From positions 107,592 through 171,591 of the forward strand of contig NW_018408834.1 of the NCBI RefSeq assembly GCF_002113885.1: a stretch of 64,000 nt of DNA. Reading direction: 5' to 3'. The notes beneath the pieces were generated by a model that was not told where the DNA came from, did no database searches, and saw only the letters and a list, made by a program, of their open reading frames with translations. The translations under genes and the position numbers were made by a program. Positions 31,909-63,633 of the stretch are shown here, piece after piece; within the stretch, counting starts at the first letter, position 1, and each line of letters opens with the position of its first letter. Source of the DNA: Mizuhopecten yessoensis. Its lineage: Eukaryota.

Positions 31909-32265
31909 CATCCCCGATATCCAGGCGTTACGCTCACTTTCGCTCTCTGCACCCCTGGAATATGTCATGGCAAAATTGAAGGCAGGAAGATAGCTGTTCG
32001 ATTTGTCTCGGGTAAAAAAACCTCACCAATCGCTAGGCTGATACCTTTCCTTTGAAGATTACAAAGGAGAGACGCCCAACTTCAAAGCCCGTTAATTTTT
32101 ACCTATGACCGCCAGATTCTTTTGATGTACATCAAAGGATCGAACTAGTCTTCTCGTCTCATCAACAAGGTGGCGCACACCGAGCCTTCAATTTTTCCAT
32201 GACATATTCCAGGGCCCAGGGGTGTAGAGAGCGAAAGTGAACGTAACCCCTGGATATCGAGGATG
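31909..32265. mobile_element. MITE with about 75-bp TIRs and a 9-bp TSD (Mutator-like signature)
   Basis: CATCCCCGATATCCAGGCGTTACGCTCACTTTCGCTCTCT.. / ..AGAGAGCGAAAGTGAACGTAACCCCTGGATATCGAGGATG, flanked by TACATAATT / TACAGAATT. Confidence 0.85.
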
Positions 32266-55038: not shown

Positions 55039-55230
55039 ATATTTCTAGGCTAGGTGATTAGGTGTCGTAGGTCGTGAGTTCGAGGCCCGGAGAGGAGGTG
55101 AGGAGGATATTTCTAGGCTAGGCGATTGTATGTCGTAGGTCGCGAGTTCGAGGCCCTTCGAGGCGCTGAGGATATGTATAGGCAAGGCAATTAGATGTCG
55201 TAGGTCGTGAGTTCGAGGCTCGGAGAGGGC
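55039..55230 (+). repeat. Three tandem copies (about 65 bp) of a tRNA/SINE-head-like unit
   Basis: ATAT(T/G)T(C/A)TAGGC..TGTCGTAGGTCG(T/C)GAGTTCGAGGC occurs three times. GAGTTCGAGGCC resembles a Pol III B box. Confidence 0.7.
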
Positions 55231-56774
55231 ACGAGTCATACAATTGTTTCCCTTCTGTACAAGCTAATGTTTTACTATACGATATATTATCGAGAAAACT
55301 AGGATAGTAGTCACTACATGGAGTACACCATTTTATTATTTGTTATATTTAAGTTCGTACGTGTACTCCAATTCCGTGATGAATCCCCGTACCACTGCGA
55401 AAAACTGTAGACATAGCCTGGATAAATCATTCTGAAAAGAAAAGAATACCTTGCGTTTTTTTTATGAGAAATAATAAAGATAAAGATAAAGATAATCAAC
55501 AAAAGCGAAGTCCAGGGTTCGAATCCCGGTCTAGTTACCGCTGACTGTCTTACACTCGGAACACTGTTGTTGGCTTTATTTTGCTTATTATATCTGTATT
55601 ATTTTTTCATGAAGGTCCCACAAGACATGGGTTTCTTTTCAGTTTTGGGGCAGACGTACGTGGGTCCGTCATAAAACTATTAGTTGACATCGAAATTGTA
55701 GTAAATATTACCCCTCATTAAGATGCTATGAATGATCCAAGGGTGATGAATTAACAACCTTCAGTCAACACCTTTTTGGTTCAATTCCTTGAATGAAGAG
55801 CATTTGAATGAGTCTAGCATATTTGGGTATAAAAAGGAAGATGGTTAAAATTGTAGCCAATTATTTAGACCCCTAAGGTGTCTACGCACATAAAACATGA
55901 ATTATTCGTCGCCTGAATACCTGGAAACAGAATTTCAAACTGGCGACACCTCGATTGCTAGCCTGATCACAGGTACATGAGAATATGTAGCTTATATTTA
56001 TATGCGGTATTTGGACCTAAACTACAAGGGTTTCAGAGTAATTTTACATGTTTTAGGAGTTCTGATTTAACTTGTCGGTAAAAATGCGCCCACCCCCTCC
56101 CAATTGAAGAGGTGGCATTTTTGTGTTTACCGAAACGCGATCGTAACTCCTAGAACTTGTAAAACTACTCTATGTGTTCTAGCCGTAAATAACATGCCCC
56201 TGAGGCCTGATATGTTATCCACCGAGCAAATTTTCGCCATATAAACATTGTTGTAGAATTGGAAGGAATATAAAGCCAGGCAACACGCATTACTTGATAC
56301 GGAACATCATTTTTTTTAATTTTTTTTTACTTTTAACATTTCTTTGCACTATCGTCAACAACTGTAAGAGCAAACTAGTATATATATTCTAAAACATCCG
56401 CCTGCACATTGAAATTGGTTTGCATGGTCGCTATAGCTTTAATGAATCCGCCCAGCGACGTATATATTACGTCTCTGATCCGCCATATAATTATTGAAAC
56501 ATATCAAACTTGTTGAAAACATTAAGCGGTACAAGTATGAATTTTAAATAGGCTGATTCCTGCCCTTTGAAGATAACAAAGGAGAGGCGCCCGTCTTCAA
56601 AGCCTGTCAACTTTTACCGTTAAGTGACCGCGAGATTCTCTTCATGTATATATCTCATCAACAAGGTGGCGCATTTTTTAGCTACATGCTTTTGTTTCTA
56701 TGTGGCTACCACCCATCACAACATCCGCGCTTACTTATATCAATTAATAAGGCCTCGAACACAAACCGATGTCG

Positions 56775-56935
56775 CATCACGTGTCCAACTTCTTTTATAG
56801 ATCTGTAATATAGATCTGTGAAAAATACATCTAATTAAGGCTTGTCGTTGAACAACGTGCAACGACAAACAACACGGGGACACGTGAATTTGTGTTGCAT
56901 GCTCAGATCTACACGTGACTGTAAAGCACGTTGTC
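56775..56935 (+). promoter_or_regulatory. E-box cluster, candidate circadian promoter/enhancer of timeless
   Basis: CACGTG at 56778, 56881 and 56912. GCACGTTG at 56926 (+) and 56853-56860 (-). CACGGG at 56873. Confidence 0.75.
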
Positions 56936-58269
56936 TGATCCACAGAAAAATATATGCGCAATGGACTAATGCGCATAAATATGTTGTCTTTGCGACATGG
57001 CGGCGAAGTGTAGAATGGACAGACTCTGGTTGATATCTAGCTGATTCACAATACCCAGGAGGACTTGAGGAGCACACACATATCGTAGTAAGTTTATTCC
57101 AATTATTTTCCTGATATTCAAAGTATGCCACCAACGACAATTCTTCAAGATTAGCAATTTCGTACGTAATGGTGACAGTTTCACGCGATTGTGAGATGTT
57201 GTTACGTATAGGTGAAGACGTTTCGTCATTTCAAATAAATGGACACATGTATGATATTTCTTTAATATTACAAGTCAGTTTGCTATTCCGACAAGCTCTT
57301 CATTAAATATAGATGACTGTATCAATTGTATATATGTATATGTGTGTCTAGATGTTCCAAAATAGGGTTTATTAGACGTTTCGCACTATTGAATATAGTC
57401 AATGAGACTATTCGCCCCATATTGGTTCATATAGGTCAGCTGTATCTATTTACATCAGTTATATAAGCTTCATCCTATAACGCTCCTTAATATCTTTTAC
57501 TCGATATTTATTTATATTCTTGATTTTATGCTCTATATGATGCACCTCATCAGTGCCTGCTGTATATTCAACATTAATTTATGTACAATATATATATATA
57601 GTTCCTGCGTGACTTAGGTCACTTGGGTTGAACTTTGCTTCAAAATCCTTCCAATGATGGTTCAAAGTAGATTTAAAGCCATTCACTGCATTCCAGTCAT
57701 CTTTACTCTTACTCCTATAACATAAGACTGTAAGAGGCCACTGGTCGGCCTTTTTCTATCGGATATAATTTTGCCGACTGCGACGCACAAGGTAATTCTT
57801 TGATGCAGATTCTGCCCGAAATCCGGGCGGAACAAAATCGGCTTGAAAAACTCAATTAAGTGGTGAACAGTTCATGACAACGATGTCTACTCACAGTTCA
57901 TATAATATAGATCTCATATGTATGCCACAGACACAAATATATGGTATATTACGGGATATAACACTCAAAATACATGTCCATGTCGTTGTTGCACTTCTTT
58001 GACCTACTTCTACAACATGGCTTCCTGGGTTGATACAAAGTAGCAGGGATAATTTCGAACGGAACGAAATGAAATTGAGTTTGTTTGTATTTCGCTTGAA
58101 GAACATTACATGTAATCCATTTTTGTATTAATCGGAAAATCATGGCAAATGTTGTCTGCTTCACTTCGAAAGAGGAAAAACTCATTATTTATGTATTTGA
58201 CACGAAATTATTCTTACCTAATTATGGATTTATAGAAAGGAATATTCATTGGGCCCTGTTGAAAATTGA

Positions 58270-58720
58270 AATGTATGTGAACACACTGGTCCCGGTGATT
58301 TTTCTCCATCTAGTTTTGCCAAATTTTTGAAAACTGTACTTAATGTATCTTGGTTTATTGTGAGAATGGATGTTACTACATTGATTGAATTTTCTACTTC
58401 TGGAATTTTCCTGGTGTCTTACTCTGTACAAACACTACTTAAGAAGTAGTTAAGTATTTTTGCTTTCGCACATTGATCTACTTCCAAGTTGCCTCCATCC
58501 GTTTCTAGACTTGGTACTGTTTTCCTTTACTTTTGTTTTTGATCAGACATATTTCCAAAAGTTTTTCGGGTTGGCCTTTAGATCTTTTGCCACTTTTTCC
58601 TCATATACTCCCCAACTCCTTTCCTTTGAGCTATTTACAGTTGCTCTATTTCTTGCTAACCTGTAGTGTTCGTAATTTTCAGGAGTTTTATTTCTCGAGT
58701 ATTGTTGCCACGTTCTCACA
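58270..58720 (-). mobile_element. CR1-clade LINE ORF2 internal remnant
   Basis: Frameshifted YEHYRLARNRAT..YEEKVAKDLKANPKNFWKYV*SKTKVKE..AKAKILNYFLSSVCT..KSPGP, which is the CR1 linker between the endonuclease and RT domains. Confidence 0.8.
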
Positions 58721-59803
58721 TCCTTGCGCCATCTTTTGACCTAATATTGGTAAATTTTCGCTTCATAGTTGTCGTAGCTCACTCGGACGCGGTCACAATT
58801 TTCACTCACCATGGCTAGTCATTTTGTTTACAATGAAATGGCGTGCTATGCGCATGTGTTGTAGGAGGGAAATCCTTGATAAAACATTGATCAGACAGGT
58901 AGAAATCCCGATAATTATCTTAGAATTATTCTTTTTTTATGAATATATATCGGCCAAATCTGATCGTTATTTTTCATAAAGACTCGCTTGATGTTAATGT
59001 AGTATTTGAAAAAAAAAATGAAAAAAAAAATACACTTGATCATGTTGTCACTTAAAAAATGATATATATTATGCCCAATTTTATTTTTAACCAGATTGAA
59101 AATAAAGTGAATCCATTGTTGCATGTCCAAAATGTTGTTCACAAACTTTTCTCCAAGTTTTAATTTCTTAAGTTGACATGTATACTTAATGTGATTATTA
59201 TTACCCCAGCCCATCAAAGTCAACGCATTTATCGGGACAATAACAAACTGTTAGTACATTATTCAATCTCGGCAAATATGGAAAATCTACCCATTGATAA
59301 ATCCAACCGAAAATTATTAGGTGGTTTGAAAGGGTGAATGATACGAACCCAATTATATCTACCGTTCCCATTTTCCGTAATTCCAAAAGTGAAACCAAAC
59401 CGCCAACTACCTTCAAGGAGACCTGGAACCACGGTAGAGACGTCAAACCCATCTTCAGAGTGGTACCGGCGAAGCACACGGAACTTTAATCCATTTGTTT
59501 ACCTACCTGGACACTTCAGCACCATTTATCCAATGAATACTGTTATCTAATTACCACTAGTGTAGTATACATGTACTTTACAATATCCATTTTCAAGTAA
59601 TGATAATCCATCATTGTTATCATGATCTTTATTTACTACTCACAATGCATTCATCATTAACTCTGCCATAGTCATGTGTTAGCTTGGAAAAGTCTGCCAA
59701 ATTATGGACTCATTAACTATGACGTCACTATTTACACCTTGTGATCGTTGCCAGGCAGAGGCACCGCATTTCATACTTTAGGTCTGTTTTTAATTGTATA
59801 CAA

Positions 59804-59850
59804 TTGTTCTGACGACGGATTATCTAATAAGCTGAAACTAGTAAACTGCA
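59804..59850 (+). ncRNA. Degenerate minimal type I hammerhead ribozyme motif (Penelope pseudo-LTR type)
   Basis: GTT-CTGACGA-c-GGATTA tctaa TAAGCT-GAAA-CTAG-TA-AAC. It has the CUGANGA and GAAA cores, palindromic stem III ACTAGT, a GUA cleavage triplet, and downstream AATAAA. Confidence 0.55.
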
Positions 59851-60455
59851 ATAAATTTGCCAAGTAACTTCAAGTGGATGTTGTCCAGTCATCTTTTTAC
59901 TTCATTTCCATTACCCCCTGGACTGGACTATCAAATTCCATAGGAATCCATCCCTTGGAGGCGCTGAACCAATACGTACATTCATTCACGGACGTTGGAT
60001 CACCCCCCCCCCCGTATTAATGAGATTATGAAAACTTTTAAAGATAAATGTACTAAAGTCAGTGTGTAGCTAAAATTAACTGGGTATATTTGCTGGCATC
60101 CAGGTACATCATCATCACTGGCGATAACTCAGATGGTAAAGGGCTGGGTTTGTATCCTGGTCTATCCATGCATTTGGCATTGTGAAAATTAACTATAGCT
60201 TTGTAGTGACTTGTTAGCTGGTAATCTTATGCCAGAAGATTGTACATCAGTGTAAGCAATCAGTCTGTACATTGACAATACACCAGCTACATATGCAATA
60301 TAGTTAATGCATATATATGTATGTATACCAAATCAATCAAGACAATCCTTTTCTGTGCATGCGACTCATATTGTAATTTCTATTACAGATATATGCTGCA
60401 GAAAATAGATTTGCTGTATTAACACATCTGAAGTGAGGATACAGATCTAGTCAAA

Positions 60456-63400
60456 ATGGAGTGGCATATCATGAATGTTGACGGGCTGAACAGCCTGTCG
60501 AGTAACCTGGGTATGGTGGAGGATGGTGTCTATATCCCGTCCTGTAACAGTCAAGGTCAGTACATATCTCTTCAAATCCATTTGCATGATATGTTAAATG
60601 CTAATATTAATGATTCCACTTGAGGATCTCGCTGCCAGAAACTGTAACAATACCCTTTAACTTTTTTTCCAGCATGACTATAGCTTAAAAAAATCCTTTC
60701 TGAAATGAAAACCATCCTTTGCAGGACTTTTCGAGAGAAAAACGAAAATTGAAACCAGTTAAAAAATATCAGAAATGTTTTGACAGTAAAAATCGACAGG
60801 GCTGGACCAGTATTAAGCCTGGACCTCCAATCATCATATACTGCCTGTCTAACCAGCTGAGCTATATATACCTGGGCAGTGGTAGTACCATGGGCCTGTT
60901 GCCTTATATTTGTTATATTTCCAATTTGCTACAATACAACTGAGAATAATATTAAATTATTAAAACTCCCTGAAAAGGCCAGTAATAATCTAACCTATAC
61001 ATTTCTATGAATATACATTTAAAGCAGATGTAACATATAATGAAAACGTTTTTTGATTCAGGCTTGTATTTATATAATACTGTAGGAAAGTTGCGAGACT
61101 TTATACTTTAAGGATGTTGAGGTGTACGTACATGTTTATACATACACAGGGGTTTCATTTGTAGCAAGTTTAAATTAGCGGCTAAAAAGAAAAGAATTCT
61201 ATACGTCAGAAACATGTATTTCACCGGCTATATTCATGAAAAATACTGGAAGAGTGCTAATAGGGTACTGTGAAATGTGCGAAAACACCTGCATACGTCA
61301 GGACAGAAACACCTGCATACGTCAGGACAGTAACACCGACTTTTGTTTCCCACAGAGATACTAGAGGAGAATGTAGAGTTCCTGATGAAAGACACACTAG
61401 AGAAGACATACAGACGACTGCTGTTTAATAATAAATTCCCCGAGAAGGTAATTCATCAAACAGTGTGTCATGCTTCAGAAACTACTTCCATTTCTCTACC
61501 AGTACAACAGTATGAGATTCATGCTTGTAAATAGTTAACTGACTTGTTACCTATGCCTATATAGTAGTCTAACTTTACATTGTTACTATTAATCACTTAC
61601 CTGATCATGATGTCACTGTTTTATCTTCCCCTGATATTACATGTTATTGTAATTATATATTTAAATAACTGACTTACATTACTGTAACCAATGTTAGAAA
61701 TTTTCACAACAAAGTTAGGTAGCCTGGGATATACTGTGTTGTAATCAGCTTTTCACAAAAGCTGTTCAGAATTTAACAAAACTTTATACGAGTGTTTGTT
61801 TATCGAGAGGTGTGTGTTTAAGGCCTTTCCAATTTGTCATCGAAGATGGCTGCTGTTGCCTCTGATTGGTCGCAATTAATATATTGACTAATTTGTTTAA
61901 ATTTGGTATGTAGTTGTATAATCCCAGGGGAAAAAAAGGTACATTTGAGGTACACTTTTTGGGGTACTTAAGCCATGCCTTAGGTACATTTTTGGTAAGA
62001 AAAAAAAAGAGGACAGAATAAGAGGGGTTAAAACCTGTTCAATATAGGTACATTTTAGGCACATTTAAGGCATGCCTAAAATGTGCCTTTTTTATACCTC
62101 TGACTGAGGTATACCTAAAATGTGCCTAAATCGTACCTCTGACTGAGGTACGTATACCTTAAATGTGCCTAAATCATATCTCAGGCAGAGGTATACCTAA
62201 ATCGTACCTCAGTCAGAGGTATACCTAAAATGTACCATGGTACTGCTAAATTAATTATAATCTATAGCATAGTTATAATCCTACATCATGTACATGTATC
62301 TAATTAACATGATAGTGTATTTTTCACCTGACTACATTTTGGCTACAGGAATTGTTGCCCCTGATAATGTACATCCAGGATGACCACACTAACTTGCAGG
62401 AAGCACTTAGGTGAGTTTTCTCTATCTCGGCTAGAATCCTAGTGTTACCAAATGTTGTAGTTTGTTAGCTTATAATTATAATGTAAGGGGGATTTTTTCA
62501 ATATCTTGATCTAAGAGAAAGTCAGAATTCTGTATTAGGATTGTAAAAAAGCAACTTCTAAGAGAGAGAGTCAGAATTCTGTATTTGGATTGTAAAAAGC
62601 AACTTCTAAGAGAAAGTCAGAATTCTGTATTAGGATTGTAAAAAGTAACTTCTAAGAAATGTCTGAAATTGTAATTATTTTGAAAATCAATCCATCTTGG
62701 AAATATTCCTGAATACTGAACTTATTTATCGTGAGTGTTTTCATTTAAATTTTGCTAAATTTCACCTTTTATGCCTTGTGCCAGCTGGGATTCAAGTAAT
62801 TGTAGTTAATACATCAACTTATTCCCTGTGATATTTATACATTTTGTTATCAAAGGTTAAAATATATCTACCAACCTAGCATATGTTTTTAAATTGTCAG
62901 AACCTTTAACAACCTTTTCTTTTTTTTACTTTAGAAGCTTTATTCCAATTAAAACAACTTATTCCAATTAAAACAACTTGTACATTATTGAGGTTTGAAT
63001 TATGCCTGTAAAATATGAGTTTTGTTGTAGACTTATGATCCTGCTGACCAATCCTGTGGATTGTTATTTGGAGACAAGTGTGGGAGAGAGAACCAAACCT
63101 CCCTGGGCCACAGAGCTGGAGAAGGCCATCAAAAAGACCATCGAAAAGTCATTTTGTAGAGCTTTCCTCACACCCATCCTAGGGGAAGTGAAGCTCCTTC
63201 TAGAGGAGGTACAAATAACATCAAAACTGAAGTGCAGTATACTATAATTCTATAATTTGTGTATAAATAAGTGCAGTGTTCTCGTCCCCATGAGCTTTTT
63301 TTTGCTTTTATTTTGTTCCTTTAGCAATAAAACAAGAGTCATATATTTGGTCAGGATCTTACTGGCATGGAGTGTGCAACAGTGTTGATTACAGAGTATA

Positions 63401-63633
63401 GGACCAAAAGTTTTCCACAAAAGATTAATAATCCTGCATAATTGTTATGAACCATTTTCATTTGTTTGCAGTATTGTGAATTATTTTTGATTTTCTCAGG
63501 CTGGACCATACGACCTAATGGATGATGCAGTGCTGGCGATAAACAACTGTATTTTCATGATTCGCAATCTTCTTTATATGTACGAGTCCAACCCAGATCA
63601 GTCCACTTTGATTCAGCACATAGAACATGTGAG
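60456..63633 (+). CDS. tim: Timeless (insect-type TIM1-like circadian protein), 5' part; the gene continues beyond the window
   Basis: Exons 60456-60555, 61356-61447, 62349-62410, 63031-63208 and 63500-63633 give MEWHIMNVDGLNSLSSNLGMVEDGVYIPSCNSQEILEENVEFLMKDTLEKTYRRLLFNNKFPEKELLPLI...LRLMILLTNPVDC...AINNCIFMIRNLLYMYE. This aligns by eye with the Drosophila TIM N-terminus (MDW..SLG..ILEE..TFRR..DLIPLL..LTVPVEC..INNCLLLLRNILHIPE). Confidence 0.88.
61923..62240. mobile_element. Truncated DNA element with CCCAG end and AGGTA(T/C)ACCT subterminal repeats (EnSpm/CACTA-like)
   Basis: Starts CCCAGGGG and contains many direct and inverted GTACCTC/GAGGTAC and AAATGTGCC repeats. Confidence 0.45.
62511..62656. 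repeat. About 48-bp tandem repeat, 3 copies
   Basis: Unit CTAAGAGAAAGTCAGAATTCTGTATTAGGATTGTAAAAAGCAACTT. Confidence 0.88.

Follow-up and report, generated by a model that had tools for sequence, protein, structure and literature searches.

A conserved E-box cluster in the proximal promoter of timeless in the scallop Mizuhopecten yessoensis and its possible control by CLOCK:BMAL

Introduction

Does the timeless (tim) gene of a scallop carry the kind of promoter through which the circadian activator CLOCK:BMAL works? The question is raised by a group of E-boxes at positions 56775 to 57095 of a 64,000-nt stretch of the Mizuhopecten yessoensis genome (assembly GCF_002113885.1, contig NW_018408834.1, positions 107,592 to 171,591 of the forward strand; the whole stretch is called the window in the following), since coding exons of a tim gene follow on the plus strand. 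An initial annotation, made from the letters of the window, had proposed a CLOCK:CYCLE (BMAL)-driven promoter at this place. Marine chronobiology has few native cis-elements for testing mollusc clocks, and in the papers searched an enhancer of the mussel period (per) gene is the sole mollusc enhancer with functional data (bioRxiv 10.1101/2025.10.08.681125).

The segment 56775-57090 is the proximal promoter and the non-coding first exon of scallop timeless, with the E-box cluster about 60-220 bp from the probable start site. A clock-controlled promoter driven by CLOCK:BMAL is the reading favored here by analogy with known clock enhancers.

The E-box cluster

Canonical E-boxes (CACGTG) were found at 56778, 56881 and 56912, and the only other copies in the window are those at 2432 and 21959. 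This agrees with the initial annotation, which had listed the same three positions within 140 bp and few copies elsewhere. The heptamer CACGTTG occurs twice in the window, both times within the octamer GCACGTTG, at 56853-56860 on the minus strand and at 56926-56933 on the plus strand. The three CACGTG and both CACGTTG are contained in 160 bp.

A total of five CACGTG was observed in the window, compared to 6.1 expected from shuffled sequences. Since this total is ordinary, the signal is the clustering of the sites and not their abundance. The probability of the clustering was determined with a scan statistic using randomly placed sites. Under random placement, three of five CACGTG would fall inside 140 bp with P ~1.4e-4, and five of 18 CACGTG/CACGTT/AACGTG sites inside 160 bp with P ~2e-6.

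The distal canonical E-box (56778..56783; context TCACGTGTC) is located 216 bp upstream of a 10-mer that is invariant among the scallops compared below, GACATGGCGG, and the second one (56881..56886; context GGGACACGTGAA) 113 bp upstream of it. The third belongs to a tandem double E-box, CACGTG-N9-CACGTT, on the plus strand (56912..56932), which is kept in three scallop genera. Taken together, the three CACGTG lie 82-216 bp upstream of GACATGGCGG and 170-310 bp upstream of the exon-1 splice donor, i.e. inside the 1-kb range considered for E-boxes. All three carry a TA-type flank (T on the 5′ or A on the 3′ side), namely TCACGTG, CACGTGA and CACGTGA. A 5′ T or 3′ A next to the first E-box (E1) has been described as informative (Paquet et al., PMC2242825).

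The gene downstream of the cluster

The coding exons downstream of the cluster are located on the plus strand, have GT..AG borders and are consistent in their reading phases. Exon 2 (60389..60555) contains the ATG at 60456 (MEWHIMNVDG...) and matches exactly residues 1-33 of the protein P0003. It is followed by exon 3 (61356..61447; residues 35-64), exon 4 (62349..62410; residues 65-84), exon 5 (63031..63208; residues 86-144) and exon 6 (63500..63633; residues 145-188), and the gene continues past the window's end. P0003, which is named 'protein timeless-like [Mizuhopecten yessoensis]', includes the peptides of the five coding exons without any mismatch, and the locus encoding it (L002; GCA_002113885.2, NEDP02005507.1) is 100% identical to the window across 6.5 kb.

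Compared with Pfam and PDB sequences, the single exon peptides gave no meaningful match, the pieces being too short to score. In a representative protein library, the exon 5 peptide (59 aa) was found to match residues 86-142 of the 910-aa protein P0001, 'protein timeless-like [Ylistrum balloti]', with 68% identity. P0001 contains the Pfam domains TIMELESS (PF04821, 1.1e-10) and TIMELESS_C (PF05029, 7.4e-10), and both domains are also assigned to P0003 in the precomputed tables. Among the PDB chains, P0003 scored 286 bits against Drosophila TIM (8dd7_B, E 3.8e-84) and 87 bits against human TIMELESS (7pfo_K, E 9.8e-24). For P0001, Drosophila TIM likewise ranks above human TIMELESS. Because of this difference the gene is classed here as Drosophila tim type and not as timeout, an assignment made by the ranking of PDB scores, not by a tree, within a PDB set that holds no Drosophila timeout sequence. 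The fly type agrees with the oyster protein CgTIM (934 aa), which was placed among insect and crustacean Timeless proteins (PMC5224872). The identity of the gene as a molluscan timeless, as initially annotated, is thus borne out by the exon matches, the Pfam domains and the rank of Drosophila TIM.

A divergent upstream gene was also considered as the owner of the promoter, but nothing pointed to one; no long open reading frame (ORF) was found on 50-56.5 kb and no gene call is present in the 10 kb upstream in L002.

Non-coding first exon and transcription start

RNA evidence for the region 56500-62400 was obtained from the raw reads of three RNA-seq runs and from the contigs of one RNA run. In run X20, three reads with three different starts join 57087 to 60389 across a GT..AG intron, skipping 3301 bases, and the best of them has 68 nt on its shorter side. 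The donor GTAAGT at 57088, which had been suggested to end a non-coding first exon spliced to 60389, is therefore used, at exactly this joint. The joints that follow between coding exons (60555 to 61356 and 61447 to 62349, i.e. exon 2 to exon 3 and exon 3 to exon 4) are present in two raw-read runs and one contig. The E-box region is in this way linked to tim transcripts.

The non-coding exon 1 covers at least 57020..57087 on the plus strand, this being the extent covered by the spliced reads. It is followed by intron 1 (57088..60388, plus strand; 3301 bp, GTAAGT...ACAG), in which repeats are located at 57682-58272, 58667-59060 and 59849-60045. RNA depth was zero over 56697-56893 and low over the bin 56894-57090. 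From this depth pattern and the coverage by spliced reads, the 5′ end of exon 1 is located between the last E-box-like motif (56927-56932) and ~57020, probably at ~56950-57020; the exon ends (57087) 155 bp past that motif. Within this interval transcription probably starts at or near the invariant GACATGGCGG.

In a further scallop-like species, the fourth, a transcript contig (L004; Logan, SRR19746223) has a 5′ untranslated region (5′-UTR) of 154 nt. It could not be aligned with exon 1 of any of the three genomes and does not place the start. This 5′-UTR is open in frame for 40 codons before the conserved start MEWHIMNV. The gene call for L004 comprises 959 aa, and its N-terminal extension was probably created by the ORF calling and is unlikely to be genuine.

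Copy number of the E-box stretch

It had been noted initially that a multicopy nature of the region would speak against a tim promoter. No second copy of 56775-57095 is present inside the window. A dispersed 100-bp repeat (56549-56648), which is 83% identical to 32034-32129, ends ~130 bp upstream of the stretch. The repeats at 56500-56696, 57682-58272, 58667-59060 and 59849-60045 attract hundreds of RNA reads with 90-95% identity that stem from other genomic copies, whereas the E-box stretch is covered by zero divergent RNA reads. The summed depth in the contig run was ~1-2 on the E-box stretch, compared to 1000-2000 on the repeats. As repeat-like reads are absent from the stretch and abundant on its flanks, the stretch does not belong to an expressed multicopy family.

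Conservation of the promoter among scallops

An alignment of orthologous promoters had been proposed in the initial annotation, and for this tim was compared with its counterparts in two further scallops, Ylistrum balloti (L001) and Pecten maximus (L003), each locus taken with 10 kb of upstream flank. A full protein, a four-scallop profile and the conserved region 470-700 served as queries in protein searches, and the hits were limited to pectinid TIMs and one distant 1423-aa protein. Since no TIM of other molluscs was among them, conservation refers to three genera of the Pectinidae.

TIM of M. yessoensis shares 67% identity with the Ylistrum protein and 70% with the Pecten protein. With blastn, only coding exons matched between the species, and the promoters did not align apart from the motifs given here. 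Motif correspondence was determined from MAFFT alignments anchored on GACATGGCGG, as default MAFFT misplaced some motifs.

The order of elements is common to the three species and consists of the E-boxes, a pair of TGCGCA hexamers, a T-rich run, GACATGGCGG and the donor AGTAAGT. The core block from the TGCGCA pair to GACATGGCGG is located at 56955-57003 in the window, 6673-6721 in L001 and 5892-5937 in L003. GACATGGCGG (56994..57003, plus strand) occurs once per locus and is the sole 10-mer common to all three promoters. Its distance to the exon-1 donor AGTAAGT is 92-102 nt in each species. Judged from this pattern, the 10-mer is a predicted core-promoter element; it resembles a YY1 core site. 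The palindromic TGCGCA hexamers (56955 and 56970, together 56955..56975) are spaced by 13-15 bp across the species, and in both the 49-kb Ylistrum and the 37.6-kb Pecten locus TGCGCA is confined to the pair beside GACATGGCGG. TGCGCA resembles an NRF1 half-site.

E-boxes were found upstream of GACATGGCGG in all three species. Relative to the 10-mer, CACGTG is located at -216, -113 and -82, AACGTG at -140 and CACGTT at -67 in M. yessoensis; CACGTG at -135 and -91 and CACGTT at -76 in Ylistrum; and CACGTG at -230 and -95 and CATGTG at -110 in Pecten. Based on the counts of each locus, the binomial probability of at least two CACGTG in the 250 bp upstream of GACATGGCGG is 4e-4 for Ylistrum and 1.5e-3 for Pecten. 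E-boxes are thus kept in both other genera.

The correspondence of individual E-boxes is uncertain, because the MAFFT runs pair the E-box at 56881 differently. In the default run it is aligned with a Pecten CACGTG, in the anchored run with a Pecten CACG fragment, and in both with a Ylistrum CATATG. At the level of sequence, the cluster, and above all the N9 tandem, has persisted among species that have lost most of the similarity around it.

The tandem E-box with a 9-bp spacer

The tandem reads CACGTG-actgtaaag-CACGTT in M. yessoensis, CACGTG-cccggaaat-CACGTT in Ylistrum (L001 6621) and CATGTG-actgccaga-CACGTG in Pecten (L003 5818). All three are located 82-110 bp upstream of GACATGGCGG and occupy the same columns of the anchored alignment. 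With its 9-bp spacer, 56912..56932 is the sole such pair in the 64-kb window, and no E-box pair with a spacer of 6-7 bp was found in the window.

The ~150 kb of the three loci were scanned for perfect E-boxes accompanied, at a distance of 3-13 bp, by a second E-box that deviates in one position at most. Six such pairs were identified, all of them within ~1.1 kb of GACATGGCGG, upstream of tim or in intron 1. The spacer is 9 bp in four of them and 7 bp in the other two, both from Ylistrum, which are located ~1.1 kb upstream of GACATGGCGG and in intron 1. On these grounds the N9 tandem is the best candidate for the core clock-responsive element.

In a mammalian (human) Per2 reporter, oscillation was sustained with spacers of 6-7 bp only, and a spacer of 8 bp nearly abolished it (PMC2254435). 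The 9-bp spacer of the scallops corresponds to 15 bp from centre to centre, or ~1.5 helical turns. It may tentatively be considered that the clock enhancer of scallops, and maybe of bivalves in general, is a double E-box whose spacer is fixed at 9 bp, a generalization that is at present rather doubtful. If true, the 9-bp geometry would imply a different arrangement of two CLOCK:BMAL complexes on the DNA or another partner factor, and it would provide a signature for finding clock-controlled, possibly tidally controlled, genes in mollusc genomes.

Comparison with known clock elements

The closest counterpart is the promoter of fly tim. It combines a canonical E-box with closely spaced TER1/TER2 boxes of the E′ type, as summarized in PMC5499816, PMC2242825 and PMC2254435, and TER1 is given as sitting 7 bp from the E-box (PMC2254435). 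The layout described in the initial annotation, an E-box with close TER (E′-type) variants, agrees with these summaries in its arrangement. Both promoters belong to orthologous genes and have CACGTG with close CACGTT-type variants near the transcription start. The scallop promoter differs in the 9-bp spacer of its tandem and in its three canonical E-boxes, and it is known here from sequence and RNA reads.

A further comparison is the EE-element or E1-E2, known from mammalian genes such as Per and Dbp and from per, tim, vri, Pdp1 and cwo of the fly, in which an E-box and a degenerate partner are conserved at a fixed short distance, less than 1 kb from the start (PMC2254435, PMC2242825). The scallop element resembles it in outline. 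Its proximal spacer of 9 bp lies outside the 6-7 bp that define the EE-element, so that a simple membership is not indicated by its sequence.

Among bivalves, the per enhancer 'block 118' of Bathymodiolus azoricus contains one CACGTG and two CACGTT in 86 nt and is conserved among related species. In S2 cells it responds to CLOCK and BMAL of this mussel, which activate it, and one CACGTT was found to be essential (bioRxiv 10.1101/2025.10.08.681125). The scallop element is likewise a bivalve element with CACGTG and CACGTT, but it belongs to tim and is described from its sequence, whereas the mussel per element has been tested functionally. In Crassostrea gigas, a sequence search located canonical E-boxes at 36-274 bp before the starts of CgCry2, CgCry1 and CgPeriod, which is the same distance range as that of the scallop tim E-boxes. 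The 5′-UTR of CgTim could not be mapped on the oyster genome and its promoter was left undescribed (PMC5224872), whereas the scallop tim promoter was located by RNA splicing and conservation. No description of a mollusc tim promoter was found in the papers searched, with most subscription journals lying outside that search.

In view of these comparisons, the proposal of a fly-type tim cis-code in a lophotrochozoan needs to be qualified. An E-box cluster is found at the scallop tim promoter as proposed, but the spacer differs, the octamer GCACGTTG is not conserved, and the comparison covers the Pectinidae. An E-box-driven tim is what the fly model predicts, and no expectation is overturned. The variant feature of the scallop tim promoter, the conserved 9-bp spacer, could prove more interesting. 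A tim promoter of ~320 bp is now precisely located, with RNA support and conservation in three genera, and the E-N9-E′ tandem is an obvious mutagenesis target in a farmed bivalve. This makes it testable whether tim is inside a mollusc CLOCK:BMAL loop, whether the spacer length has an effect and whether one element serves both daily and tidal rhythms.

Regulation by CLOCK:BMAL and alternative explanations

In the proposed mechanism, transcription would start at or near GACATGGCGG, with the TGCGCA pair just upstream. The 220 bp before GACATGGCGG would act through three CACGTG and two CACGTT-type E-boxes, with CACGTG-N9-CACGTT as the core. The CLOCK:BMAL heterodimer of bHLH-PAS type would bind these E-boxes, perhaps as two complexes side by side on the tandem. 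Its binding would activate tim and so complete a loop of negative feedback, the role that CLK:CYC has at the tim gene of the fly.

That the promoter is driven by CLOCK:BMAL appears rather likely on the following grounds. In flies and mammals, clock enhancers combine a good E-box with a degenerate one a fixed distance away (PMC2242825, PMC2254435), the mussel per enhancer responds to mussel CLOCK and BMAL (bioRxiv 10.1101/2025.10.08.681125), and oyster tim mRNA (CgTim) co-varies with that of per (CgPeriod), with rho ~0.84, the co-variation being described for light-dark cycles (LD) and constant darkness (DD) (PMC5224872).

Several observations weigh against this interpretation. The hexamer CACGTG is a binding site for further basic helix-loop-helix (bHLH) factors, among them USF, MITF/TFE and MYC/MAX. 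The conserved tandem has a spacer of 9 bp, longer than the 6-7 bp found in the EE-element (E1-E2) of fly and mammals. The other E-boxes shift their position between species, and CATATG or CATGTG sometimes replaces the CACGTG of another species. In addition, the T/A flank is missing at the upstream CACGTG of Ylistrum (CCACGTGC) and Pecten. Finally, the start is placed by three spliced reads, all of a single run, together with conservation.

The strongest alternative accepts the stretch as a tim promoter and assigns the E-boxes to bHLH-ZIP factors of the USF, MITF/TFE or MYC/MAX type, with constitutive, light- or nutrient-driven expression. CACGTG does not tell these factors apart, and CACGTGAC at 56912 also fits a USF-type site. 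The circadian EE-element, moreover, has spacers of 6-7 bp (PMC2254435), a range that the tandem exceeds. However, tim belongs to the core clock genes and its orthologue in the fly is directly targeted by CLK:CYC, a conserved canonical E-box with a CACGTT-type partner is a described signature of clock enhancers (PMC2242825), and mussel CLOCK:BMAL acts via CACGTG and CACGTT (bioRxiv 10.1101/2025.10.08.681125). Occupation by bHLH-ZIP factors is for these reasons considered unlikely.

A light-responsive or second-loop module would combine the E-boxes with D-box-like sites in intron 1 (TTACGTAW; bound by PAR-bZIP, VRI or PDP1), and expression would then track light or the second loop more than CLOCK:BMAL alone. 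D-box-like sites were found in intron 1 of all three species, at 57163-57169 and 57201-57210 in the window, at ~6936-6945 in L001 and at ~6386-6395 in L003. The second site of the window (GTTACGTATA, 57201..57210, plus strand) recurs unchanged in Pecten, while a perfect ATTACGTAAT is present in Ylistrum. Modules of E-box and D-box confer light responses in zebrafish per2. In oyster, tim levels shift with the light regime (PMC5224872). On the other hand, neither the order nor the position of the D-box-like sites is kept between the species, the M. yessoensis sites match only 7 of 8 positions, and the AT-rich TTAYGTAW is common in these loci (12, 36 and 12 per locus). Such a module would also add to activation through the E-boxes and does not exclude it. 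As the explanation for the promoter it is regarded as quite improbable.

A chance grouping or a part of a mobile element with no regulatory role, to which the unremarkable CACGTG count of the window and the adjoining dispersed repeat (56549-56648) could point, is hardly credible given a clustering P of ~1e-4, a stretch that is single copy in the window and free of repeat-like reads, and the recurrence of E-boxes and N9 tandem in two genera where the surroundings do not align.

Elements in intron 1

Besides the D-box-like sites, the 5′ end of intron 1 contains a conserved palindromic element, GACGTTTCGTC (57217..57227, plus strand). Each locus has a single copy of its consensus GACG[AT]TTCGTC, at a distance of 157-228 nt past GACATGGCGG (~6868 in L001 and ~6155 in L003), and the order of the D-box-like sites relative to it varies by species.

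Further CACGTG pairs were identified in intron 1 of Ylistrum (+548/+563) and Pecten (+640/+663) and are absent in M. yessoensis. The Ylistrum pair (L001 7260-7293) has the arrangement CACGTG-N9-CACGTG-N7-CATGTG and the Pecten pair (L003 6568-6596) the arrangement CACGTG-N17-CACGTG. In both, the first E-box is located within the 9-mer TCACGTGTC, which in M. yessoensis is found upstream at 56777.

Inverted repeat and repetitive elements

The E′-box-like AACGTG of the M. yessoensis cluster is enclosed by a perfect 9-bp inverted repeat (56842..56868), formed by TTGTCGTTG at 56842-56850 and CAACGACAA at 56860-56868, around the minus-strand GCACGTTG. Both octamers and the position of one of them within this repeat were therefore verified as initially annotated. 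As single-stranded DNA, the inverted repeat folds with -9.1 kcal/mol (z = -3.0), and all except 3 of 200 shuffled sequences fold less well. No copy with at most one mismatch was found within 400 bp of GACATGGCGG in Ylistrum or Pecten.

Three copies of CAACGACAA are present in the 64-kb window, compared to 0.44 expected, and all are located at the tim promoter (56842-56868 and 57132-57140). Two of the three make up the inverted repeat. Since neither orthologue carries a copy near its promoter, CAACGACAA is lineage-specific, and the octamer GCACGTTG, the 9-bp inverted repeat and the three CAACGACAA copies are specific to M. yessoensis.

Within the repeat at the 3′ part of intron 1, a read joint on opposite strands at 59853/59859 suggests a hairpin-like or inverted element. 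Upstream of the promoter, self-hits of L002 and the window revealed a short tandem duplication at 55039-55228, with units of ~65 bp that are 83-88% identical to each other.

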